This document shows positions 2,669 to 23,900 of a stretch of DNA of 26,003 nt, one piece after another. The stretch covers positions 1-26,003 of the forward strand of contig NW_021834100.1 in assembly GCF_006345805.1 (NCBI RefSeq). The letters are read 5' to 3'. The position numbers were made by a program, and so were the translations under genes. Each line of letters opens with the position of its first letter. The stretch's first letter is position 1. Below the pieces are notes generated by a model, which did no database searches, was not told where the DNA came from, and was given only the letters and a program-made list of their open reading frames with translations. The stretch is from Octopus sinensis (Eukaryota).

Positions 2669-3278
2669 ACACACGTGTGTATATGTGTGTGTATATATGT
2701 GTGTGTTTGTGTGTGTGTGTGTGTTTGTATATGCATTTGTGTGTATATGTATATGTGTGTGCATATATATGTATGTGTGTGTGTGCATATATATGTATGT
2801 GTGTGTGTATATATATATATATGGGTGTGTGTATATGTATGTGTGTGTATATATATATATGTATTTGTGTGTGTATATTTATATATGTGTGTGTGTGTAT
2901 ATGTTGGTGTGTTATATAGTGTGTGTGTATATGTGTGAGTGTGTGTGTATATGTGTGAGTGTGTTGTATATTATATGTGTGGTGTTTATTATATGTGTGT
3001 GTGTGTATAGTATATATGTATGTGTGTGTGTGTGTGTATATATATATATGTGTGTGTGTGATATATATAATGGTGTGTGTGTGTATATATATATGTGTGT
3101 TATATATATTGTGTGTATATATATATATGTGTGTTGTGTATATATATATATGTGTGTGTGTAATATATAATATGTGTGTGTGGTATATAATATATATATG
3201 GTGTTTGTGTGTATATATATATATGTGTGTGTGTGTATATATATGTGTGTGTATGTGTGTGTGTGTGTATATATATAT
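2669..3278. repeat. Compound (TG)n/(TA)n microsatellite
   Basis: Direct inspection. It explains the V/C/Y/I-rich pseudo-ORFs at 2517-3395. Confidence 0.97.
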
Positions 3279-3486
3279 GAAGAAAAAAGGTGTTCAGAAT
3301 GCTGGGTGGTTGTAAAAATATATATTTATTTACATATCACATTATTTCTTCATATAAGCGCTTTCAACTACTCCTGTAGTTTCATCAGTAGTTGAAAGTG
3401 CTAATATGAAGAAATATATGTGATATGTAAATAAATATATATTTTTACAACCATCCAGCATTCTGAACACCTTTTTCCTTTCATAT
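3275..3486. mobile_element. Fold-back palindromic element (about 95-bp arms, 14-nt spacer) with a hammerhead core at its axis
   Basis: 3275-3372 is the near-perfect reverse complement of 3387-3486, and the element is flanked by TA repeats. Confidence 0.85.
3355..3388 (-). ncRNA. Minimal hammerhead ribozyme core lacking the 5' strand of stem I in cis
   Basis: The minus strand reads CUGAUGA AACUAC AGGA GUAGUU GAAA GCGC UUA: a perfect 6-bp stem II and a palindromic AAGCGCUU stem III region. Confidence 0.6.
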
Positions 3487-3740: not shown

Positions 3741-3924
3741 CTTCTAACATATATATATATATATATATATATGTGTGTAAAGAGTTAATAACTCCAGTTT
3801 TCAAAGAATATATTTGGCATTCTTTCATTTGTTAACTCCAGTATCAACATATATACCGGTGTGTGTAATATTTTTATATATAAACACACATGCACTCCAT
3901 CCCTATATTATATTATAAAGTCAA
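3741..3924 (+). repeat. Left arm of a long-range inverted repeat (partner 7248-7430)
   Basis: CTTCTAACAT...GCACTCCATCCCTATA...AAAGTCAA is the reverse complement of 7248-7430. Confidence 0.9.
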
Positions 3925-3989
3925 TATAATATATATATATATATATAGAAAGTCAATATATATTAATATATAGATATATATATAAAAAG

Positions 3990-4032
<43 letters not shown>

Positions 4033-4373
4033 AATATATATATATATATATATATATAGATATATATATATAAAGTAAATATATATATAGATATAGATAT
4101 GTTATAAAGGCAATATAATATAGATATATATATATATATTAAGTCAATATATAGATATATATATATATATAAAGGCAATATAGATATAGATATATATATA
4201 TAGATATATAAAGTCAATTATATATATATATATATATAGATATATATATAAAGTCAATATTATATATATATATATATAATATAAAGCAATATATATATAT
4301 ATAAGTCAATATATATATGATAAAGTCAATATATATATATATATATTATAATATATATATATATATATAAAGT

Positions 4374-4407
<34 letters not shown>

Positions 4408-4445
4408 AATATATATATATATAAAGTCAATATATATATAAAGTC

Positions 4446-4476
<31 letters not shown>

Positions 4477-4942
4477 ATTATATAGAAGGAGCTTCTACAG
4501 GACTAGTACTGTTTCTTCAAGAGAAATCTTCCTGAGTTCTCTTGAATGAAACAGTACTAGGCCTGTAGAAGCTCTTCTATATAATAATTAATTTTACTCT
4601 GCTATGTATTGAGTACCTTACTACTGTGGTTAACCCCGGATCAACCCGGACCTACATATATATATATATATATATTATAGAATATATATATATATAAAGT
4701 TATATATATAGATATATATATATATATAAAGTCAATATATATATAATATAAAGTCAATATATATATATATATAAAGTCTATATATATAGATTAGATATAT
4801 ATATAATATATATAAAGTCAATATAGATATATATAATAGTCTTATATATATATAGATAGAGAATATAGAAAGTCTAGATAGATATAATATATATATATAT
4901 ATAAAGTCTATAGATATAGATATAATATAGATATCTAATAAA

Positions 4943-4978
<36 letters not shown>

Positions 4979-5798
4979 TAAAAGTCAATAGATATATATA
5001 TAGCAAGTCATATATATATATATAAAGCAATATATAGATATATATAAAGTCAATAATATATATATATATAATTTTTTAAAGTCAATATTATATAGATAAA
5101 GTCAATATAATATATATAAAGTCAATATATATATATAATATATATATTATAAAGTCAATATATAGATATATATAAAGTCAATATATATATATATATATAA
5201 AGTCAAATATATATATATATAAAATCAATATATATATATAATAAAGTCATATATATATATATATATAGATATATATAGCTAAAGTCAATAGAGATAGAGA
5301 TATATAGATATAGAATATATATATAAAGTCAATATATGATAGATATATATATATATAGATATAGATATAAAGTCTATGAGATATATAGCTATACAGATAG
5401 AATATATAGATATAGATATATATATATAAAGTCTATATAGAGATATATATATACATACAGATATATAGATAGATTATAGATATATATATATATAAGTGCG
5501 AGATATATATATAGATATACATATAGATATATAGATAAATATATATAAAGTCTATATATATATAGAGATATACCTGATATTATATAGGATATATATATAT
5601 AAAGTCATAGATATATATATATATATAGATATATATAGATATATATAAAGTCGAGATATATATTATATATATATATATATATAAGTCAATATATATATAT
5701 AAAGTCTATATATATATATACATATTAGATATATATATTAGATATATATATATATAGATATAAAGTCAATATATATATATAAAGTCTATATATATAAG

Positions 5799-5834
<36 letters not shown>

Positions 5835-6258
5835 ATATGATATATATAAAGTCTATATATATATATACAGATATGATAGAGATAGTATATAGATATATAA
5901 AGTCTATATATATATTTATACATAGATATAGATATATATATATATTAAAGTCAATATAGATATATGATATATATATATATATATAAAGTCATATATATAT
6001 ATATAATATTATATAAAGTCTATATATATATCTACATATATTATATGATATAGATAATAGATATAAGTCTATATATATATACATATATATTATAATATAT
6101 ATATATATAATAAAGTCTATATATATATATACATATATATATAAGAATATATATAAAGTCAATATATATATATATATATATTATAAATATATATATATAT
6201 ATATAAAGTCAATATTATATATAGAATAGATATATATAAAGTCTATATATATAGATAC

Positions 6259-6299
<41 letters not shown>

Positions 6300-6640
6300 T
6301 CTTATATATATATATATATAAAGTCAATATATATATATATATATAAAGTCTATATATATATATATATATATATAAAGTCAATATATATATATATATAGAA
6401 AGTCTAGATATATATATATATATATATAAAGTCAATATATATATATATAAAGTCATATATATAATATATATATATATAAAATCAATATATATAAAGTCAA
6501 TATAGATATATATATATATATAATAAATCAATATATATTAAAGTCAATATATATATATTATATATATATATAAAATCAATATATATAAAGTCAATAATAG
6601 TATAATATATATAAAGTCAATATATATATATATATAAAGT

Positions 6641-6681
<41 letters not shown>

Positions 6682-6705
6682 AATATATATATATATATAT
6701 AAAGT

Positions 6706-6749
<44 letters not shown>

Positions 6750-6832
6750 GTCAATATATTATATATATATATATCTATATATATAAAGTCAAATATATAT
6801 ATATTATATAGATATATATATATATATAAAGT

Positions 6833-6868
<36 letters not shown>

Positions 6869-6954
6869 AATATATATATAAAGTCAATATATATATATAA
6901 TATATAAAGTCAATATATATATATAAAGCAATATATATATATATATATAAAGTC

Positions 6955-6987
<33 letters not shown>

Positions 6988-7255
6988 AAGTCTATATATA
7001 TAGATATTAAGTCAATATATTATATATAAAAGTCAATATAACATATATATATAAAGTCAATATATATATATATATAAAGTCAATATATATATATATATAT
7101 AAAGTCAATATATATATATATATATAAAGTCAATATATATATATATATATATATAATAAAGTCAATATATATATATATATATAAAGTCAATATATATATA
7201 TATATATATATATAAAGTCAATATATATATATATATATATATATATATTGACTTT
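3917..7255 (+). repeat. About 3.3-kb satellite of AAAGTC(A/T)A units separated by variable (TA)n
   Basis: Dozens of AAAGTCAA/AAAGTCTA motifs, all in one orientation until TTGACTTT at 7248. The central part is noisy. Confidence 0.95.
4470..4591. mobile_element. Short palindromic (fold-back) element embedded in the TA satellite
   Basis: TATAGAAGGAGCTTCTACAGGACTAGTACTGTTTCTTCAAGAGAA pairs with TTCTCTTGAATGAAACAGTACTAGGCCTGTAGAAGCTCTTCTATA around an 11-nt spacer. Confidence 0.85.
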
Positions 7256-7430
7256 ATATATATATATATATATATAGGGATGGAGTGCATGTGTGTTTAT
7301 ATATAAAATATGTACACACACAGGTATATATGTTGATACTGGAGTTAACAAATGAAAGAATGCCAAATATTTCTTTGAAAAATGGAGTTATTAACTCTTT
7401 ACACACATATATATATATATATGTTAGAAG
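7248..7430 (-). repeat. Right arm of the long-range inverted repeat (partner 3741-3924)
   Basis: Reverse-complement match to 3741-3924 with a few substitutions and indels. Confidence 0.9.
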
Positions 7431-7527: not shown

Positions 7528-8497
7528 ATATAGCTTCATGCGTAGACTTGAAAGAAAAGAAATGAGCTAGCATGATCCGCTGGATGTGTAATGTCAGTGT
7601 GAATGCACGACAGAGTGTAAGCACCCTGAGAGAAATGCTAGGCATAAGAAGCATCAGATGCGGTGTGCAAGAGCGACGCTGCGAGGTATTGGTCATGTAC
7701 TGCGGATGGATGAGGAGAGATGTGTGAAGAAGTGCCACTCCCGAACAGTTGAAGAATCAGGGGGAGAGGTAGACCCAGGAAAGACATGGGATGAGGTAGT
7801 CAAGCATGACCTCAGAGCGTTGGGCCTCACTGAAGCAATGGCGAAGGACCGAGATCTCTGGAGATGTGCTGTGACTACTAAGACCCGGGATGCTTCCGGC
7901 ACCAGGTCCGAATACCCCCTGCCCATTCAAAGTACCTTGGATCCGGAAACATCTCGCTGTGCTTGAGGAGACCTGTTGAGTCAAGTGCATGTACATGAAC
8001 ATCGAACCAAATATCAATGGAAACAGTAGTTGTGATACCTGTGCCGGTATCATAAAAAGCACCATAAAAAGCACCATCTGAACGTGGCCAATGCCAGTGC
8101 CGCCCCGACTGGCTTGTGTGCCGGTGGCACATAAAAAGCACCATCCGAACGTGGCCGATGCCAGCGCCGCTCCGACTGGCTTCTGTGCCGGTGGCACATA
8201 AAAAGCACCATCCGGACGTTGCCAGCTCCGCCTTGGCTGGCTTCCGTGCCGCTGGAACATTAAAAGCTCCAACTGATCGTGGCCGACGCCGGACCTCCCC
8301 TGGCACCTGTGCAGGTGGCACGTAAAAAGCACCCACTACACTCGCGGAGTGGTTGGCGTTAGGAAGGGCATCCAGCTGTAGAAACTCTGCCAGATCAGAC
8401 TGGACCTGGAGCAGCCCCTGGCTTCCCAGAACCCGGTCGAACCATCCAACCCGTGCTAGCGCGGAAAACGGACGTTAAACGATGATGATGATGATGA
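7528..8497 (+). mobile_element. 5'-truncated RTE-clade LINE: frameshifted ORF C-terminus, 3' UTR with about 67-bp subrepeats, (GAT)n tail
   Basis: Across frameshifts it translates to ...MIRWMCNVSV...TLREMLGIRSIRCGVQERRLR.IGHVLRMDEERCVKKC...RGRPRKTWDEVVKHDLRALGLTEAMAKDRDLWRCAV, typical of RTE ORF ends. The tail is ACGTTAAAC(GAT)n. Confidence 0.9.
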
Positions 8498-8509
8498 TAT
8501 ATATCTATA

Positions 8510-8817
8510 TATTCAAAGGGCAAGACCGCAAGGTAGTTGGCCGTATGCTAGAAATAGATCACCAACAATCAAACTACAAAGAATGTTCTCTAGAGGAAAA
8601 TTCAGCGAACACCAGAATAATTAGGCGGGCAAGACAGATGAAAACTATAAAAAAAACAGAATTAATCACATACCAGCGGTTTCAACTATTAACAAATGAA
8701 TTACTTACTCAATCCAAATGTCCGTAGTTTCATCAGTGCGATCGTTCCGCCAAATGTAATTTGCAAAACTAATTTCTAGCATACGGCCGACCACCTAGCG
8801 GTCTTGCCCTTTGAATA
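8510..8817. mobile_element. 308-bp element with about 48-bp terminal inverted repeats and TA flanks, containing a hammerhead ribozyme
   Basis: TATTCAAAGGGCAAGACCGC...GTATGCTAGAAAT is inverted at 8770-8817; TA at 8508-8509 and 8818-8819. Confidence 0.85.
8664..8743 (-). ncRNA. Type I hammerhead ribozyme (predicted), cleavage after GUA between 8671 and 8670
   Basis: Minus strand: GAUCGCA CUGAUGA AACUA [36 nt] UAGUU GAAA CC GCU GG UA^ UGUGAUU. Stem I has 7 bp (2 G:U), stem II has 5 bp and stem III is A-U, C-G, C-G. All invariant core bases are present. Confidence 0.8.
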
Positions 8818-8989
8818 TACACATGTATTAGAATTTTTTCTGATTTTTCAGATTTTTGTATGCTAGGCTACTGGTTTTAAATTAATATTAATTTATCTCC
8901 CTCATTATTTAAATATATATACACACACACCAAAAATCAAAATTAAAATCAAACCAAACCAAATCAAATCAGATATCAGAAAGCAGAAC

Positions 8990-9477
8990 CAAAATCGAAG
9001 TCGATCAACATCAATGGAAATTGCAGCTGTGATACCAGTGCCGGTGACAAGTAAGCGAACCATCCGATCGTGGCCGTGGCCAGCGCCAGTCCGACTGGCC
9101 TCCGTGCCGGTGGCACGTAAAAGCACCATCCGTTCGTGGCCGTTGCTAGCCTCGCCTGGCCCCTGTGCCAGTGGCACGTAAAAGCACCATCCGTTCGTGG
9201 CTGTTGTTAGCCTCGCCTGGCCCCCGTGCCGGTGGCATGTAAAAAGCACCATCCATCCGTGGCCATTTGCCAGCTCCGTCTGGCACCTGTGCAGGTGGCA
9301 CGTAAAAAGCACCCACTACACTCATGGAGTGGTTGGCGTTAGGAAGGGCATCCAGCCGTAGAAACATTGCCAGATAAGACTGGGCCTGGCGCAGACTTCT
9401 GGCTTCCCAGACCCCAGTTGAACCGTCCAACCCATGCTAGCATGGAAAGCGGACGCTAAATGATGATGATGATGATG
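8990..9477 (+). mobile_element. RTE 3' UTR-only copy with 61-bp internal subrepeats and a (GAT)n tail
   Basis: Homologous to 8010-8497; GCC(G/A)GTGGCA units at 9106, 9167 and 9228. Confidence 0.9.
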
Positions 9478-9789
9478 ACACCTACGCAAATAAATATGGC
9501 AAAGGTATAGAATACGTACACTCGTTGGTTAGGGTTAATTTTAGGGTTACTGTTTTTGTTAAGCAGAAAACTGGTGGTGTACGTATTCCGAGAACACAGG
9601 AATTTTGGGGAAAAACAATTGGGGGTTATTTTTGATGACCTCTTGCCCCTCCCTCATTTTACCCCATTTTAGACCTCATTTTCTTGAAACTTGAAAATGA
9701 TCAAATTAGACATTAGTGTGTGTGTGTGTGTGGTGGGGGGGGAAATAATTGGCTTGGAACCCAACAGAGAATGTTGATTATTAAACACC

Positions 9790-9986: not shown

Positions 9987-10401
9987 ACAAAATGGGACAA
10001 GAACGCAAAACACACAAAGAGACGACACAAAAAACGGACGGGTCATTCGAAGCCTCTAATCTTCAGTCAAGAACCGGATCATCCTCGCAATTTCGGCTGA
10101 TTAATCTTGAGATCACTCCGATCCGGCCAGCCCCAAGGAAAAACTAAGCTACGAGCATTAGATTTCTTGGAAAAAGGATCGAATGTATATGAAACAAGGA
10201 CAGTGGCATCGTCTGTTTTTCTGTCCTTATTTCGTATGCATTCGATCCTTTTTCCAAGAAATCTAATGCTCGTAGCTTAGTTTTCCCTTGGGGCTGGCCG
10301 GATCGGAGTGATCTCAGGATTAATTAGCCGAAATTGCGAGAATGACCCGTCCGTTTTTTGTGTTGTCTCTTTGTGTGTTTTGCGTTCTTGTCCCATTTTG
10401 T
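9987..10401. repeat. Large palindrome: arms 9987-10203 and 10221-10401, 17-nt spacer
   Basis: Near-perfect reverse-complement match; the right arm lacks the 36 nt corresponding to 10049-10084. Confidence 0.92.
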
Positions 10402-10644
10402 GCTGGTAGCACGTAAAAGCACCATCCGTTCGTGGCCGTTTGCCAGATCTGTCTGGCACCTGTGCAGGTGGCATGTAAAAAGCACCCACTACACTCACGG
10501 AGTGGTTGGCGTTAGGAAGGGCATCGAGCCGTAGAAACACTGCCAAATCTGACTGGGCCTGATGAAGCCTTCCGGCTTCACAGACCCCAGTTAAACTGTC
10601 CAACCCATGCTGGCATGGAAAACGGACGCTAAATGATGATGATG

Positions 10645-10647
<3 letters not shown>
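10402..10647 (+). mobile_element. RTE 3' UTR fragment with (GAT)n tail
   Basis: Homologous to 9230-9477. Confidence 0.9.
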
Positions 10648-10691
<44 letters not shown>

Positions 10692-11180: not shown

Positions 11181-12407
11181 GCATTAGGAAGGGCCTCCAG
11201 CCATAGAAACCATGCCAAAGCAGACCTCACTGGTGCTGGTACCGCATAAAAAGCACTCAGTACACTCTGTGGAGTGGTTGGCATTAGGAAGGCCTCCAGC
11301 CATAGAAACCATGCCAAAGCAGACCTCACTGGTGCTGGTACCGCATAAAAAGCACTCAGTACACTCTGTGGAGTGGTTGGCATTAGGAAGGCCTCCAGCC
11401 ATAGAGACCATGCCAAAGCAGACCTCACTGGTGTTGGTACCGCATAAAAAGCACTCAGTACACTCTGTGGAGTGGTTGGCATTAGGAAGGCCTCCAGCCA
11501 TAGAGACCATGCCAAAGCAGACCTCACTGGTGTTGGTACCGCATAAAAAGCACTCAGTACACTCTGTGGAGTGGTTGGCATTAGGAAGGCCTCCAGCCAT
11601 AGAGACCATGCCAAAGCAGACCTCACTGGTGCTGTTACCGCATAAAAAGCACTCAGTACACTCTGTGGAGTGGTTGGCATTAGGAAAGGCCTCCAGCCAT
11701 AGAAACCATACCAAAGCAGACCTCACAGGTGCTGGTGTCACATAAAAAGCACTCTGTACAGAATGTAAAGTGGTTGGCATTAGGAAGGCCATGTAGCCAT
11801 AGAAACCATACCAAAGCAGACCTCACTTGTGCTGGGGTCACATAAAAAGCACTCTGTACAGAATGTAAAGTGGTTGGCATTAGGAAGGGCATGTAGCCAT
11901 AGAAACCATACCAAAGCAGACCTCACTGGTGCTGGTTCCACATAAAAAGCACCCAGTACACTCTGTAAAGTGGTTGGCATTAGGAAAGGCATCCAGCCAT
12001 AGAAACCATACCAAAGCAGACCTCACTGGTGTTCGTACCACATAAAAAGCACTCAGTACACTCTGTGGAGTGGTTGGCATTAGGAAGGGCATCCAGCCAT
12101 AGAAACCATGCCAAAGCAGACCTCACTGGTGCTGGTGCTACATAAAAAGCACTCTGTACAGAATGTAACATGGTTGGTATTAGGAAGGGCATCCAGCCAT
12201 AGAAACCATACCAAAGCAGACCTCACTGGTGCTGGTGCTACATAAAAAGCACTCTGTACAGAATGTAACATGGTTGGTATTAGGAAGGGCATCCAGCCAT
12301 AGAAACCATACCAAAGCAGACCTCACTGGTGCTGGTTCCACATAAAATGCACTCAGTACACTCTGTAAAGTGTTTGGCATTAGGAAGGGCATCCAGCCAT
12401 AGAAACC
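11181..12407 (+). repeat. Tandem array of 99/100-bp units (12 full plus about 30 nt), same family as 354-1017 but opposite orientation
   Basis: Unit starts at 11181, 11281, 11380, 11479, 11578, 11677, 11777, 11877, 11977, 12077, 12177, 12277 and 12377. A degenerate RTE tail with (GAT)n follows at about 12460-12515. Confidence 0.95.
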
Positions 12408-12799
12408 TTATCATAGCAGATAAGAGAAACCAACACGGTCCTCAGTCTAGCTGTATCCTGTGGAACCGTCCAACCCATACCAGCAGAGATCAAATACATT
12501 ATGATGATGATGATGGTGATTGTTCAGACCAGCTGTTCCCTTTTGTTTTAATCTTTCTAAGTCCACATCAGACTGGCTGCTTATATTCTCTCTGTGGGAT
12601 ATCTTCAGGAGAATAATGATATTGCTCTTTATCTAGCTGTTTCAAGGTTTCCTCTTCGTTATTATTCTTAATGCTCCTATCAGATTGGCTTCTCTTCTGG
12701 TAGGCTTCGATTGATCTTGCATTTTCCCTCCCCGCTGGGGTATTCCATGAGGAATGCCAATAAACTGGCTAATCATATGCAAAATGTGTATTTCTTTAA

Positions 12800-13478
12800 C
12801 CCCTTACCCGGCAGAAACGAATATATGCGTTTTGACCGAAATCGTTTTTTTTCTATCTCTGGCAAGTTGACTCGTCAAAAGATAGACTCGCCAAAATCGA
12901 CAGCAAACGAGTTCCTTCGTCTAAAAACGGGTTAACTTGTTTCTGCCCATTTCATTTCATTTCATTTGAGTTTGAGTCCATGCTCAGGCCAAGTCGAAGA
13001 CTCCACCCTCAGAGTCTGGTGTGGTTGCCAGGTTGTATTCTTTGTTTAATTTTGACATGAGTAGGAGCGAGTTTGAGTCAGTTTGTGTTCGTTGTATATA
13101 TCCTGGGAGATGGGGTTCATCTCTAATGGTGCTTAAGTATCTATCCAGCTGCAATTTGAATGATTCCACACTGCATCCTGATAGATTTCTGACATGTACG
13201 GAATGGAGTTGAATAGTGGTGCTCCTCGAACCAACAGACTTGACTCTCGCAGGGTTTTTGCTGCCTGGCCAGCCTTTTTGTTGATTGGTGGGAGCTGGCA
13301 GCGTCTTCCGTGGCGCAGTGAGTGGTAATTTAAAATCAATATTATTGAATGAAAATTCATAATAAATAAGGGTTGAAATATACCTCGAAATCACCATTCA
13401 AAACATAGTAAAATAAAACAATTAAAAAATATGCCTGAAAAAATACATTTATTTTCAAAATAATTGTTGGGTAAGGGG
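12800..13478. mobile_element. TTAA-flanked piggyBac-type non-autonomous element enclosing a LINE fragment
   Basis: TTAA-CCCCTTACCC (12796-12809) and GGGTAAGGGG-TTAA (13469-13482) form a perfect 10-bp TIR plus TSD. Confidence 0.7.
12949..13330 (-). mobile_element. 5'-truncated CR1/L2-group LINE 3' end, frameshifted
   Basis: Joining two frames gives RHGRRCQLPPINKKAGQAAKTLRESSLLVRGAPLFNSIP/HVRNLSGCSVESFKLQLDRYLSTIRDEPHLPGY, a typical post-RT C-terminus. The tail is (AAATG)n at 12949-12967. Confidence 0.8.
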
Positions 13479-13592: not shown

Positions 13593-14036
13593 TTGGGTTG
13601 TCCGGAAAGATCGTGCCGATTTTTAAAGGAAAGAAAAAGGTCAATAAACACTTGCCATTACATTTTTAATCAACCGGATATGAACCATTTTGTTGCACAA
13701 TGCGTCTCCATCTTTCCTTTAACTTGAAAATACCCACTTCCCAGAATTGAGGTGGTTTCATGGCAAAGATTTCATCATAGTATCTTTTTACCTCATCAAA
13801 GGAATTGAAATTTTTACCATTAAGACTATTCTGCAGAGACCCAAAGGAGCAATATCTGGTGAATATGGAGGGTGGGGTAACACATCCCAGCCGAGCTGCA
13901 GCAATTATTGTCTGGTTCCCAAAGCATCAAGTGCCGAAAATGAACTTTCTTATCATTTGAAAGAATATTTTTTGTTCTATAGGACTGTATTAAAATTTTT
14001 TTTTAATTGAACTACCTTCACTGAATGGTCAAGGTT
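13593..14036 (-). pseudogene. Mariner transposon, 3' part (TIR and transposase C-terminus), internally deleted
   Basis: TA then TTGGGTTGTCCGGAAAGATCGTGCCGATTTTT is mariner TIR-like. The minus strand gives LLQLGWDVLPHPPYSPDIAP and SLQNSLNGKNFNSFDEVKRYYDEIFAMKPPQFWEVGIFKLKERWRRIVQQNGSY. Confidence 0.88.
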
Positions 14037-14969
14037 CATCATCATCATATAGCGTCCGCTTTCCATGCTAGCATGGGTTAGACAGTTCAACTGGGGTCTG
14101 GGAAGCCAGAAGGCTGCGCCAGGCCCAGTCTGATCTGGCACTGTTTCTACAGCTGGATGCCCTTCCTAACACCAACCACTCCGTGAGTGTAGTGGGTGCT
14201 TTTTACGTACCACATACACAGGTGCCAGACAAGGCTGGCAAACGACCACGATTGGATGGTGCTTTTTACGTGCCACCGGCACGGGGCCAGACGAGGCTGG
14301 CAACGGCCACAATCGGATGGTGCATTTTACGTGCCACCGGCACGGAGGCCAGTCGGGGCGGCACTGGCAACAGCCACATTTGGTTCTCTTACTTGCCATC
14401 TCTTGGTTCTCTTACTTGCCATCGGCACTGGTATCACAGCTACAATTTCCATTGATGTTGATCGATTTCGATTTTGATTTTCATTTTCACTTGCCTCAAC
14501 AGGTCTTCACAAGTAGGGTTTGTGTCACAAGAAGGAAAGGTATGCATAAGTGGGCTGGCTACGTCCCAGGTAGAGGCCACGAGTTATGGTCTCACTTGTC
14601 CTGCCGGGTCTTCCCACGCAGAGCATACTTCCAAAGGTCTCGGTCTCTGGTCATTTCCTGGGTGAGACCTAATGTTCGAAGGTCGTGCTTCACCACCTCG
14701 TCCCAGGTTTTCCTGGGTCTACCTCTTCCACAGGTTCGCTCAACCGCTAGGGTGTGGCACTTTTTCACACACTATCTTCATCCATTCTCGCCACATGACC
14801 ATACCAGCACAAACTTCTCTCTTGCACACCACAACTGATGCTACTTAGGTCCAGCTTTTCTCTCAAGGTACTTACACTCTGTCAAGTATGAACACTGACA
14901 TTACACATCTATCGGAGCATACTGACTTCATTTCTTGCGAGCTTACGCATGTCCTCAGCAGTCACAGCA
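14037..14969 (-). mobile_element. 5'-truncated RTE LINE inserted into the mariner
   Basis: The minus strand gives AVTAEDMRKLARNEVSMLR...WYGHVARMDED...CGRGRPRKTWDEVVKHDLRTLGLTQEMTRDRDLWKYAL, then the 3' UTR and a (GAT)n tail at 14037. Flanked by a diverged direct repeat of about 54 bp. Confidence 0.92.
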
Positions 14970-15224: not shown

Positions 15225-15693
15225 CATTGCTGTATTTCTTTTGAGATGCTCTGTGTTTCTTTCCCTTACTTTAAATCATCATCATCATCATTTAGCATCC
15301 GTTTTCCATGCTAGCATGGGTTGGACGGTTCAACTGGGGTCTGGGAAGCCGGAAGGCTTCGTCAGGCCCGGTCAGATCTGGCAGTGTTTCTACGGCTGGA
15401 TGCCCTTCCTAACGCCAACCACTCCGTGAGTGTAGTGGGTGCTTTTTACGTGCCACCCGCACAGGTGCCAGACGGAGCTGGCAAACGGCCACGCTCGGAT
15501 GGTGCGGGGGCCAGGCGTGGCTGGCAACAGACAACAAAGAATTTAGTAAAATAACTTAGTCGCAGTTTATGTTCCTAACACTAGCTGAATGATAACTAAG
15601 GTTTTGGTGGAAGATTTCAATTCAAAACTTATGAAAACGAAACATTTCTACTCAGAGCCAGAGCCAGTTTCACCTGGGTTGGTAACAAAAGGG
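15225..15693 (+). mobile_element. TTAA MITE of the 24213/24466 family, split by an RTE 3' fragment and carrying an internal micro-inversion
   Basis: 15225-15276 and 15531-15693 align to 24466-24688; it ends AAAAGGG-TTAA. Confidence 0.85.
15277..15530 (-). mobile_element. RTE 3' UTR fragment
   Basis: (CAT)n then the reverse complement of the RTE tail module. Confidence 0.9.

Positions 15694-19041: not shown

Positions 19042-19086
<45 letters not shown>
18914..19086. repeat. Trinucleotide tracts (CAC)n(CAT)n(CGT)n at 18914-18975 and (TAT)n at 19045-19086
   Basis: Direct inspection. Confidence 0.95.
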
Positions 19087-21573
19087 TTGAAGGGAGCAAG
19101 CTAGCAGAATCAATAACACAGGCAAAATGCTTAATAAAATTTCTTCTGACTCGTTCCATTCCGAGTTCAAATCCCACTGATGTCGACTTTGTCTTTCATC
19201 CTTTCAGGGTCAGAATGATAAGTACCAGTTTAATACTGGGGTCAGTGTTATCGATTAATCCCCTTTCCCCAAAATGCTGGCCTTGTGCTGAAATTTGAAA
19301 CCATTATCATTATTGAGTGAGAGAGCAGTGCATGCCATCAAAGTGAAACAGGTAGAAATACACAAAGCCCAACATGCCTACCCGTCTGATAAGGGTACAT
19401 CAGGTACATGCATCACAACCATATGTGCGTGACATGGTGATCTCATATCAAGATAAACAGCGCATGACCTTGCAGGTGGGGCCCAGTTAGAATTTTCTTC
19501 AGGTTGAGTAACCCATCCCGCTAAAAAGGTCCCTGATTAAGGGTTGTTTAAGGATGTTGAACGAACCACCTATGTTTCCAGAGGTGTATTATTCAAACCC
19601 CAAAGAATCCCTCTCAACACATGGCCATGATGCTCTCCCACTACTTCTGCTCGTGACCAGAGATGCACATATCGTCAGCCACTAAGGGACATGCTCAACT
19701 GGTTTAAGGTCAAACAACTGACAAGCAAATCTGTGGTATTGAGCAGAATATTTGCTGTAAAACCCATCTTTTATACCAAGACAAAACAATGTACATGATA
19801 ACACTTCCAATCAGTTAAGATCAGAAGCCACGAGAATCACTGCCTGGTACTGCATCAGGGCATTTATTATTATTATTCTTATTATTATTTTGAAGGCAGT
19901 GAACTGGCAGAATTGTTAGTATACCAGGTGAAATGCTCTGCAGCTTTTGTCCATCTTTATGTTCCGAGTTCAAATTCTGCTGAGGTCAACTTTGCCTTTC
20001 AGCCTTTTGGGATTGATAAATTAAGTACCTATGAAACATTGGGGGGGGGTCGATGTCATTGACTAGCACCCTCCCCACAAAATCCAGGCCTTGTGCCTAT
20101 AGTAGAAAGGATTATTATTATTTTGTTCTGAGTTCAAATTTCTCCAGGGTCGACTTTACCTTTCATCCTATTGGGGTCAATAAATTAAATATCAGTACTG
20201 GGGTCGATAAATTAAGCACCAGTGAAACACAGGGGTCAATGTAATCAACTATTTTCCACCCCACAAATTGCAGGCCTTGTGCCTATAGCAGAAAGGTTTA
20301 TTGTTACTATTATTATATTATTATTATTATTATTATTATTTTGAAGGGAGCAAGCTAGAAGAATCAATAACACAGGCAAAATGCTTAATAAAATTTCTTC
20401 TGACTCGTTCCATTCCGAGTTCAAATCCCACTGATGTGACTTTGTCTTTCATCCTTTCAGGGTCAGAATGATAAGTACCAGTTTAATACTGGGGTCAGTG
20501 TTATCGATTAATCCCCTTTCCCCAAAATGCTGGCCTTGTGCTGAAATTTGAAACCATTATCATTATTGAGTGAGAGAGCAGTGCATGCCATCAAAGTGAA
20601 ACAGGTAGAAATACACAAAGCCCAACATGCCTACCCGTATGATAAAGGGTACATCAGGTACATGCATCACAACAATATGTGCGTGACATGGTGATCTCAT
20701 ATCAAGATAAACAGCGCATGACCTGCAGGTGGGGCCCAGCCAGTTAGAATTTTCTTCAGGTTGAGTAACCCATCCCGCTAAAAAGGTCCCTGATTAAGGG
20801 TTGTTTAAGGATGTTGAACGAACCACCTATGTTTCCAGAGGGTATTATTCAAACCCCAAAGAACCCTCTCAACACATGGCCATGATGCTCTCCCACTACT
20901 TCTGCTCGTGACCAGAGATGCACATATCGTCAGCCACTAAGGGACATGCTCAACTGGTTTAAGGTCAAACAACTGACAAGCAAATCTGTGGTATTGAGCA
21001 GAATATTTGCTGTTAAAAACCCATCTTTTATACAAGACAAAACAATGTACATGATAACACTTCCAATCAGTTAAGATCAGAAGCCACGAGAATCACTGCC
21101 TGGTACTGCATCAGGGCATTTATTATTATTATTCTTATTATTATTTTGAAGGCAGTGAACTGGCAGAATGTTAGTATACCAGGTGAAATGCTCTGCAGCT
21201 TTTGTCCATCTTTATGTTCCGAGTTCAAATTCTGCTGAGGTCAACTTTGCCTTTCAGCTTTTGGGATTGATAATTAAGTACCTATGAAACATTGGGGGGG
21301 TCGATGTCATTGACTAGCACCCTCCCACAAAAACAGGCCTTTGCTATAGTAGAAAGGATTATTATTATTTTGTCCTGAGTTCAAATTTCTCCAGGGTCGA
21401 CTTTACCTTTCATCCTTTTGGGGTCAATAAATTAAATATCAGTACTGGGGTCGATAAATTAAGCACCAGTGAAACACAGGGGTCAATGTAATCAACTATT
21501 TTCCACCCCACAAATTGCAGGCCTTGTGCCTATAGCAGAAAGGTTTATTGTTACTATTATTATTATTATTATT
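19087..21573 (+). repeat. Direct tandem duplication of about 1.25 kb (19087-20340 and 20341-21573)
   Basis: Collinear match with the offset shrinking from 1254 to 1247. Each copy holds SINEs (19088-19300, 19893-20110, 20125-20297) and an unclassified segment of about 550 bp (19315-19864). Confidence 0.95.
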
Positions 21574-23698: not shown

Positions 23699-23870
23699 GG
23701 GCACGTAAAAAGCACCCACTACACTCATGGAGTGGTTGGTGTTAGGAAGGGCATCCAGCTGTAGAAACACTGCCAGATCAGACTGGGCTTGGCGCAGCCT
23801 ACTGGCTTCCCAGACCCCAGTTGAACCGTCCAACCCGTACTAGCGCGGAAAACGGACGTTAAACGATGAT
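23699..23870 (+). mobile_element. RTE 3' terminal fragment
   Basis: Homologous to 8318-8490; ends ACGTTAAACGATGAT. Confidence 0.9.
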
Positions 23871-23900
23871 TATTATTATTATTATTATCATTATTTTATT

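Follow-up and report, generated by a model that had tools for sequence, protein, structure and literature searches.

A hammerhead-like motif within a short inverted-repeat element of Octopus sinensis: working ribozyme, retroelement remnant or look-alike?

Introduction

Can a self-cleaving RNA of the hammerhead type reside within an element that moves as DNA? This question is raised by positions 8510-8817 of a 26,003-nucleotide stretch of Octopus sinensis DNA (contig NW_021834100.1, positions 1 to 26,003 of the forward strand; hereafter the window), where a 308-bp element bounded by terminal inverted repeats (TIRs) contains, on its minus strand, a sequence with the consensus layout of a type I hammerhead ribozyme. 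Genomic hammerheads of animals are known from retroelements (viz. Penelope-like elements, retrozymes and satellites resembling short interspersed elements, SINEs), where they are thought to process RNA intermediates. An earlier note on this DNA had described the locus as a complete type I hammerhead ribozyme within an element that looked like a Tc1/mariner-type MITE (miniature inverted-repeat transposable element), and had suggested either an inverted Penelope or retrozyme insertion or a hybrid element carrying a self-cleaving RNA. The reading that we favour, to which we give about an even chance, is that 8510-8817 is a MITE-like TIR element, its superfamily not assigned, with a fortuitous or relic hammerhead look-alike inside it. 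Of the two parts of this reading, the first is that the element, judged from its sequence, is most likely a class II (cut-and-paste), non-autonomous and non-coding MITE; the second is that the hammerhead module, judged from simulations and predicted folds, most probably matches the consensus fortuitously, or is a decayed relic at best, and does no work for the element. The weights given here and below to the different readings are matters of judgement and not of calculation, and only a marginal share of them is left for anything other than the explanations discussed.

Results

The element is non-coding, with an interior GC content of 35%, and its longest open reading frame (ORF), of 81 aa, has no homologue in the protein collection searched. 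Its inverted repeats, which were delimited by self-alignment and block counts, are located at 8508-8555 (plus strand) and 8772-8819 (minus strand), and they are identical at 45 of 48 positions, or at 43 of 46 when the outer TA is left out (on the left side this TA, 8508-8509, is possibly flank or target-site duplication). These repeats are far beyond chance. Two blocks within them, 8508-8529 and 8539-8555, are perfectly conserved, and each is found in the window at its two places only, where 0.00-0.04 occurrences are expected; all three mismatches (8530, 8535 and 8538) fall inside the 9-nt spacer at 8530-8538. The confinement of the mismatches to a spacer between two perfect blocks is the pattern of a bipartite binding site, the estimated chance of such clustering being p ~0.08. 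The inverted similarity breaks off sharply at 8555/8772, and the two halves of the interior have no detectable relation to each other. A direct copy of the core 9-mer of the TIR, GGGCAAGAC, recurs on the plus strand at 8627-8635 (a rough estimate of its chance is ~0.06).

TA or TATA is present outside both ends of the element, TATA being its own reverse complement. The insertion site lies in a TA-rich tract, 11 nt past the (GAT)n tail of a SINE-like repeat, and due to this a TA target-site duplication is indistinguishable from the background. An empty site could also not be reconstructed from the other copies of the flanking SINE-like repeat, as the element is located outside that repeat, beyond its tail. 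The terminal bases, TTCAAAGGG..., recall no superfamily consensus known to us. The earlier description of TIRs of about 48 bp with TA flanks is confirmed by the 45/48 match and by the TA or TATA at both ends. The label of a Tc1/mariner-type MITE is retained insofar as it denotes TIRs on a short non-coding element, but its superfamily part is not established, since the TA flanks stand in a TA-rich tract and the terminal bases are uninformative.

A second element with similar termini, referred to here as element B, was identified by inverted-repeat and motif searches at 9987-10401, at a distance of 1.2 kb from the first. It is a near-perfect foldback of 415 bp, whose arms (9987-10203 and 10221-10401) are 94-98% complementary around a 17-nt centre, with a 36-nt indel in the left arm, and which carries the motif GGACAAGAACGCAA at 9995-10008 and 10380-10393. 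It is abutted on the right by a 5'-truncated SINE-like copy and on the left by TA-rich DNA; neither a hammerhead core within it nor a clean TA duplication at its ends is seen. The termini of the first element and of element B can be aligned (TATATT-CAAA--GGG-CAAGACCGCAA versus TAAATTACAAAATGGGACAAGAACGCAA), and when the ungapped 14-mer GGGCAAGACCGCAA was searched for with up to three mismatches, 4 matches were found in the window, all of which are termini of the two elements (0.62 expected). The gapped form of this motif, CAAA(0-2)GGG(0-1)CAAGA[AC]CGC, likewise occurs in the window only at the four termini of both elements, 8-9 nt from their ends. The similarity of the two elements is restricted to the terminal ~28 nt.

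These observations favour a class II TIR element over a double-primed retro-insertion, because the motif is common to two elements, both of which are two-ended and one of which is symmetric, and because their likeness is limited to the terminal ~28 nt. Class II elements as a rule have two inverted ends, which are uncommon among double-primed retro-insertions, and the recurrence of the TIR core 9-mer at 8627-8635 points weakly in the same direction. An element of this kind would be moved in trans by a transposase encoded elsewhere, whose recognition sites would be the subterminal motif GGGCAAGACCGCAA and both of the conserved blocks of the TIRs.

The hammerhead-like module occupies the minus strand of 8743-8664, which reads GAUCGCA-CUGAUGA-AACUA-(36 nt)-UAGUU-GAAA-CC-GCU-GG-U-A-UGUGAUU and matches the full descriptor of a type I hammerhead, in which helix I is open. 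The descriptor, which was our own, specified CUGANGA, helix II, GAAA, a helix III closed by A15.1-U16.1, H17 and helix I, with G-U pairs permitted and broad loop ranges; when both strands of the window were scanned with it, this module, with helices of 7, 5 and 3 bp, was the single match. Read from its 5' end, the module begins with the 5' strand of helix I, GAUCGCA (8743-8737; pair probabilities of 0.67-0.97 in the isolated 80-mer), and the core box CUGAUGA (C3 to A9, 8736-8730). These are followed by the helix II domain (8729-8684), in which AACUA and UAGUU close an insert of 36 nt, and by the core box GAAA (G12, A13, A14 and A15.1, 8683-8680). Helix III (8680-8672) is made up of one A-U and two C-G pairs with the loop GCU, U16.1 being U 8672, and the 3' strand of helix I, UGUGAUU, is at 8670-8664. 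The cleavage triplet is GUA, and the scissile bond, as read from the sequence, is predicted between A17 (8671) and U1.1 (8670). The C15.2-G16.2 pair is present, and the 7 bp of helix I include 2 G-U pairs. The 10.1-11.1 pair (8729/8684) is A-U in place of the highly conserved G10.1-C11.1, no register of the module permits a bulged extra nucleotide between A9 and 10.1, and palindromy is absent from helix III and loop 3 (the loop GCU is non-palindromic). Contacts between loops 1 and 2 are not recognisable in the module.

The layout described in the earlier note agrees base for base with the sequence, with our descriptor and with the isolated fold, and the cleavage at 8671/8670 that it predicted is the position read here, 3' of A 8671. 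Its term 'complete type I hammerhead ribozyme' is appropriate at the level of the consensus, with a short helix III, but lacks support in a functional sense, in view of the A-U pair at 10.1-11.1 and, as described below, the lack of an Rfam match and a fold that loses to a competing helix. Similarly, the 'stem II with 36-nt loop' does comprise a 5-bp stem and 36 nt, but these 36 nt are not a loop and form an interrupted extension of helix II, which has 16 bp in all.

A further resemblance within the element concerns the plus strand at 8634-8647, which reads ACAGATGAAAACTA and is a near copy (1 mismatch and 1 extra A) of the minus-strand box ACTGATGAAACTA at 8724-8736, with an alignment score that is not significant. 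The RNA complement of this near copy, UAGUUUUCAUCUGU, could pair with the catalytic box and mask it. The suggestion that the interior halves are decayed inverted copies of each other, with a second, dead hammerhead on the plus strand, was considered and rejected, as their alignment scores are within the shuffle range and ACAGATGAAAACTA/ACTGATGAAACTA is the sole echo between them.

How often such a module arises by chance was estimated by simulating 5.4 Gb of random sequence with the base composition of the window, as much as the two strands of a 2.7-Gb genome comprise. The simulated sequence contained 15 motifs whose helices were of at least 7, 5 and 3 bp, and 2 when the helix III loop was limited to 6 nt or less, and the chance expectation for a genome of 2.7 Gb is hence ~15 equally good motifs, or ~2 with the short loop. 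The numbers from a separate 40-Mb first-order Markov run are in agreement with these. The motif is significant for one window and unremarkable at the scale of the genome. Among 212 simulated chance matches, a G-C pair at 10.1-11.1 was present in 10%, and at least 30 nt were found inside helix II in 62%. As these features are common among the simulated matches, the A10.1-U11.1 pair and the 36-nt insert of helix II in the octopus module look like the oddities of a chance match.

The scoring with Rfam hammerhead models, which the earlier note had proposed, gave no match at any threshold tried, viz. with the gathering threshold on the window, with E<=10 on the 431 nt of 8450-8880 and on the 88 nt of 8660-8747, and with E<=5 on the whole window. 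This failure to reach the models, which may be due in part to the length of the helix II insert and to the speed filters, is no proof of absence. The Rfam searches of the window and of this region returned just small nucleolar RNA or CRISPR noise and microRNA artefacts from microsatellites.

When folded in isolation, as an 80-mer or a 101-mer, the module has the hammerhead three-way junction as its minimum-energy fold. Most of the pairs of helices I and II have probabilities above 0.9 (range 0.67-0.99) and those of helix III, even in the isolated 80-mer, of only ~0.5. The 46-nt helix II domain is an interrupted hairpin of 16 bp (z = -3.3), its 36-nt insert folding as 4 bp and 7 bp with a 6-nt loop. 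Further upstream on the minus strand, the segment AAUUACAUUUGGCGG (8761-8747) is able to pair with 8679-8664 over 15 bp, U 8672 being bulged, and this competing helix covers helix III, the scissile site and the 3' strand of helix I. Once 16 nt or more of native upstream sequence are added, the competing helix prevails and P(helix I) drops to 0.01-0.04. A hammerhead forced within the interior of the element has an energy of -39.9 against -50.1 kcal/mol for the minimum-energy fold, i.e. ~10 worse, and one forced within the whole element has -120.4 against -129.7 kcal/mol, i.e. ~9 worse. For the RNA of the whole element, a long hairpin is predicted (-129.7 kcal/mol, z = -11.7), which is closed by the pairing of the TIRs. 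In a dimeric helix III of the module (-8.8 kcal/mol), two of the pairs would be G-U and the centre would be a C-C mismatch. All of these values are from thermodynamic folding, and co-transcriptional folding is outside its reach.

Based on these folds, the module in a minus-strand transcript starting near 8755 could fold and cleave slowly after A8671, cleavage being slow at best due to the weak helix III and the A-U pair. In longer native transcripts, the competing 15-bp helix and then the 46-bp TIR duplex would be favoured over the catalytic fold, and cleavage after A8671 would be confined to a brief interval of folding in which the competing helix has not yet formed or fails to form. No tandem array is present over 8510-8817, and the window holds one unit, one motif and no second cleavage site. 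With a single cleavage site, neither circular RNA nor a retrozyme-like cycle would be expected at this locus, and the earlier designation of the element as a possible retrozyme is not upheld.

The comparison of the module with known hammerheads gives a mixed picture. With the canonical metazoan type I hammerheads (Rfam Hammerhead_1; the schistosome, newt, mussel and coral examples of satellite, SINE-like and retrozyme type) it shares the type I topology, the core, the GUA triplet and C15.2-G16.2, as well as a short helix III with a small loop and an AT-rich non-coding context (PMC4209133; PMC7229834). However, it has A-U at 10.1-11.1 where the canonical pair is G-C, a non-palindromic loop 3 (GCU) and no tandem array, and its helix II is of 46 nt with 16 interrupted bp, whereas the canonical helix II has ~4 bp and a small loop. 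Real Penelope-type hammerheads have been distinguished from random matches by Cervera and de la Pena on the basis of a G10.1-C11.1 pair that is conserved, one additional nucleotide following A9, and a 15.2-16.2 and loop 3 that are palindromic and allow dimer formation (PMC4209133). The minimal hammerheads of Penelope-like elements resemble the module in their short or weak helix III and in a helix II that is longer than the canonical one (PMC4209133), and insertions of these elements resemble the locus in the AT-rich or (TA)n site, the flanking inverted repeats and the solitary truncated copy (PMC8557442; PMC11167929; PMC4209133). The octopus module nevertheless has no G10.1-C11.1, no additional nucleotide separating A9 from 10.1, no palindromic helix III and no reverse transcriptase (RT), GIY-YIG or pseudo-long-terminal-repeat (pLTR) sequence nearby, and the termini of its element are related to a symmetric foldback (element B) that has no hammerhead.

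The retrozymes of animals, which are non-LTR elements (LTR, long terminal repeat), are similar to the 308-bp element in their length of ~300 bp, low GC content, type I hammerhead-like motif and predicted highly self-paired RNA (PMC7229834). They differ from it in their arrangement, the units being repeated in tandem head to tail and each having its own hammerhead, which permits excision and circularisation, whereas here one unit with one site is bounded by inverted repeats. The MITEs (Stowaway/Tc1-mariner-like and foldback-like) share with it the size class of a 308-bp non-coding element, TIRs of 46-48 bp, an AT-rich interior, a TA on either side, a strong potential to form a hairpin and related termini nearby. 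The points of difference from MITEs are that the TA duplication is ambiguous within a TA-rich tract and that no hammerhead-bearing MITE was found in the literature searched.

Copies and homologues of the element were sought in the window, in viral contigs, in metagenomes and in prokaryotic genomes. A blastn search of the element against the window returned only the element itself. An exact 18-mer of the TIR had one match in the viral contigs, a chance match in a GC-rich phage-like contig, and the two-block TIR pattern had none in the JGI metagenomes. For a TIR 17-mer there were 8 matches in metagenomes and 7 in prokaryotic genomes, all of them chance matches of 17-20 nt, and the one with the longest extension (34 nt at 88%) is in bacterial DNA that has no relation to the element. 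In the viral contigs, nothing was found with the 3' half of the hammerhead or with element B's terminus. The sequence strings of the TIR and of the local SINE occur in no paper of the literature searched, the supplements of two relevant papers contain no matching sequence, and in this literature we met with no DNA transposon or MITE described as carrying a hammerhead.

Repeat surroundings of the element

The element is situated among SINE-like repeats and microsatellites, and no RT or GIY-YIG reading frame and no pLTR is present in or adjoining it. The SINE-like family is represented by at least 6 copies in 26 kb (8001-8507, 9059-9478, 10400-10656 and 23700-23889, and on the minus strand 14036-14377 and 15275-15471), which are 80-90% identical, contain an internal minisatellite of 61-67 bp and end at the 3' side in ...GGAAAACGGACG(T/C)TAAA(C/T)(GAT)n. 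Tails of non-LTR retrotransposons, corresponding to the C-terminal part of the protein (GRPRKTWEE..., ...LDRYLSTIRDEP...), are found at 7625-7966 and 1040-1128 on the plus strand and at 12984-13397 on the minus strand; they lack an RT domain, and the two tail ORFs searched have no homologue in the protein collection. A tandem duplication at 19062-21563, with a period of ~1.25 kb and two copies that are 94-100% identical, consists of tRNA-type SINEs with GGGGTC(G/A)AT and (TTA)n, and a SINE of this type forms a repeat of 184 bp x2 at 1534-1902.

A 100-bp satellite is present in two arrays of opposite orientation (354-1018 and 11181-12420) with 6.7 and 12.4 copies that are 93-95% identical, and the SINE-like repeats contain related segments of 80-90 nt. 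A 3.3-kb (AT)n-rich microsatellite block extends from 3924 to 7276 (GC 8-14%) and is preceded by a (TG)n(TA)n compound repeat of ~600 bp (2675-3279). Microsatellite tracts, including these two, give rise to many spurious sub-threshold Rfam matches of the mir-297/mir-466 type.

Discussion

The inference linking the two parts of the favoured reading is as follows. The genuine hammerheads known in animals belong to Penelope-like elements, to retrozymes and to repeats related to these (PMC7229834; 2026 preprint 10.64898/2026.07.22.740005), and in view of this the evidence for a class II element also counts as evidence against such a lineage for the hammerhead. If the element is of class II, then a fortuitous or relic motif is likelier than one derived from Penelope.

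Several observations weigh against this reading, and they should be considered together. Every invariant position of the hammerhead core is right (C3, U4, G5, A6, G8, A9, G12, A13, A14, A15.1, U16.1 and H17), and the number of chance motifs expected per window is only 1.4e-4, or 1.9e-5 with a short helix III loop. The module also has ordered structure beyond what the descriptor demands, with p = 0.025 when the helix II insert is shuffled and p = 0.0145 when insert and flanks are redrawn (p = 0.066 when the flanks alone are shuffled). However, as the features concerned were examined only after they had been seen, these p-values carry less weight than the figures suggest. The natural hammerheads of retrozymes and of viroid-like RNAs are likewise out-competed by rod-like folds in the full-length RNA, and since they face a similar competition, the competing helix and the penalty of 9-10 kcal/mol weaken the case for a working ribozyme and do not settle it. 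The class II assignment, moreover, is based on one related element and comes without a transposase, a clear target-site duplication or further copies. Lastly, a single retroelement origin would cover the type I hammerhead with short helix III, the inverted flanking copies and the AT-rich or (TA)n target without any coincidence, as all three are hallmarks of Penelope-like elements (PMC8557442; PMC11167929).

This last point leads to the alternative that best survives, which we regard as a possible though somewhat doubtful one, viz. that the locus is an insertion of Penelope-like or retrozyme lineage and that its hammerhead is genuine by descent. It would consist of two joined 5'-truncated copies from the 3' region of a hammerhead-bearing retroelement, one of 262 nt (8771 to 8510 on the minus strand) and an inverted one of 46 nt (8772-8817), formed when both strands of an AT-rich target were nicked and both 3' ends primed from the same internal start, the 'TIRs' then being two copies of the 3' end of the element. 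Penelope-like elements indeed often show an inverted 5'-truncated copy that creates flanking inverted repeats, they are inserted in microsatellite, (TA)n or AT-rich targets, and their type I hammerheads are located near the 3' end or in the pLTR (PMC8557442). For one such element, the purified enzyme nicks both strands of the DNA and extends them, reverse transcription beginning from a fixed internal RNA start (PMC11167929), and pairs of minimal hammerheads 100-700 bp apart on opposite strands, as well as many solitary truncated copies, have been reported (PMC4209133). The sharp end of the inverted similarity at 8555/8772, with unrelated interior halves, and a motif well above chance for a single window are also in keeping with such an origin. 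The AT-rich or (TA)n target and the flanking inverted repeats are both present at the element, and a Penelope insertion and a class II MITE explain them equally well.

What counts against an insertion of this kind is, firstly, the module itself, which has none of the three features of Penelope-type hammerheads (G10.1-C11.1, a further nucleotide following A9, and palindromy of helix III and its loop) and no Rfam hammerhead match. Secondly, no RT or GIY-YIG frame adjoins it, although solitary truncated copies are common (PMC4209133). Thirdly, element B is a symmetric foldback with the same terminal motif and no hammerhead core, no single-ended copy is seen in the window, and the likeness to element B is confined to the terminal ~28 nt, as would be the case for a transposase site.

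If, in line with the favoured reading, the element is of class II, its hammerhead could still be genuine by descent, provided that the interior of the MITE took up a fragment of a hammerhead-bearing retroelement through nested insertion or gap-repair capture; such a captured ribozyme would have no role for the element. MITE interiors are often unrelated captured DNA, the element looks to be of class II, and the perfect core and the extra helix structure would be accounted for. Penelope-like and TIR elements are, in addition, both abundant in cephalopod genomes (PMC13282606). However, the atypical features of the motif and the lack of model support tell against a captured ribozyme in the same manner as they speak for a look-alike, no boundaries of a nested insertion are visible within 8556-8771, and we consider a capture unlikely.

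Quite improbable, in our judgement, is a hybrid element, i.e. a MITE family with a selected, working hammerhead, which would, for example, cut read-through transcripts inside the element or process the element's own RNA. The type I hammerhead at work in such a TIR-bounded, non-autonomous family would be one in which helix II is unusually long and the 10.1-11.1 pair is A-U, possibly gated by the upstream competing helix, and the family would be new, as the literature searched has yielded no DNA transposon with a hammerhead. The completeness of the motif, with all core positions right, which is improbable in one window, the ordered hairpin of helix II, and the presence of a competing helix that could serve as an on/off switch are consistent with this proposal. 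Against it are the A10.1-U11.1 pair and the weak helix III, the strong disfavour for the catalytic fold in its native context, the lack of such a module in the related element B, and the ~15 motifs of this quality per genome that chance alone provides; the collections searched also contain no second copy in which conservation or covariation could be seen. The explanation that no mobile element is involved, and that a local inverted duplication or a hairpin-forming sequence from replication slippage or repair has a chance hammerhead-like motif, is in accord with a region dense in microsatellites, minisatellites and duplications and with the absence of a second copy from the window and the collections searched, but it is very improbable given the sharp ends at a TA-rich site, the two perfectly conserved TIR blocks and a terminal motif common with an independent element 1.2 kb away.

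For the repeat catalogue of this genome, the two elements with a common terminal motif are a small and ordinary addition. If a hammerhead did work in a TIR-bounded DNA element, this would break the association of animal hammerheads with retroelements and would raise the question of what use a ribozyme is where movement is not RNA-based. On the present evidence a look-alike or relic is likelier, and the significance of the finding is mainly that of a caution: a perfect core with three helices is expected to arise ~15 times by chance in a genome of this size, and the chance matches typically show a 10.1-11.1 pair other than G-C and a long helix II insert, which are the same oddities that are seen here.

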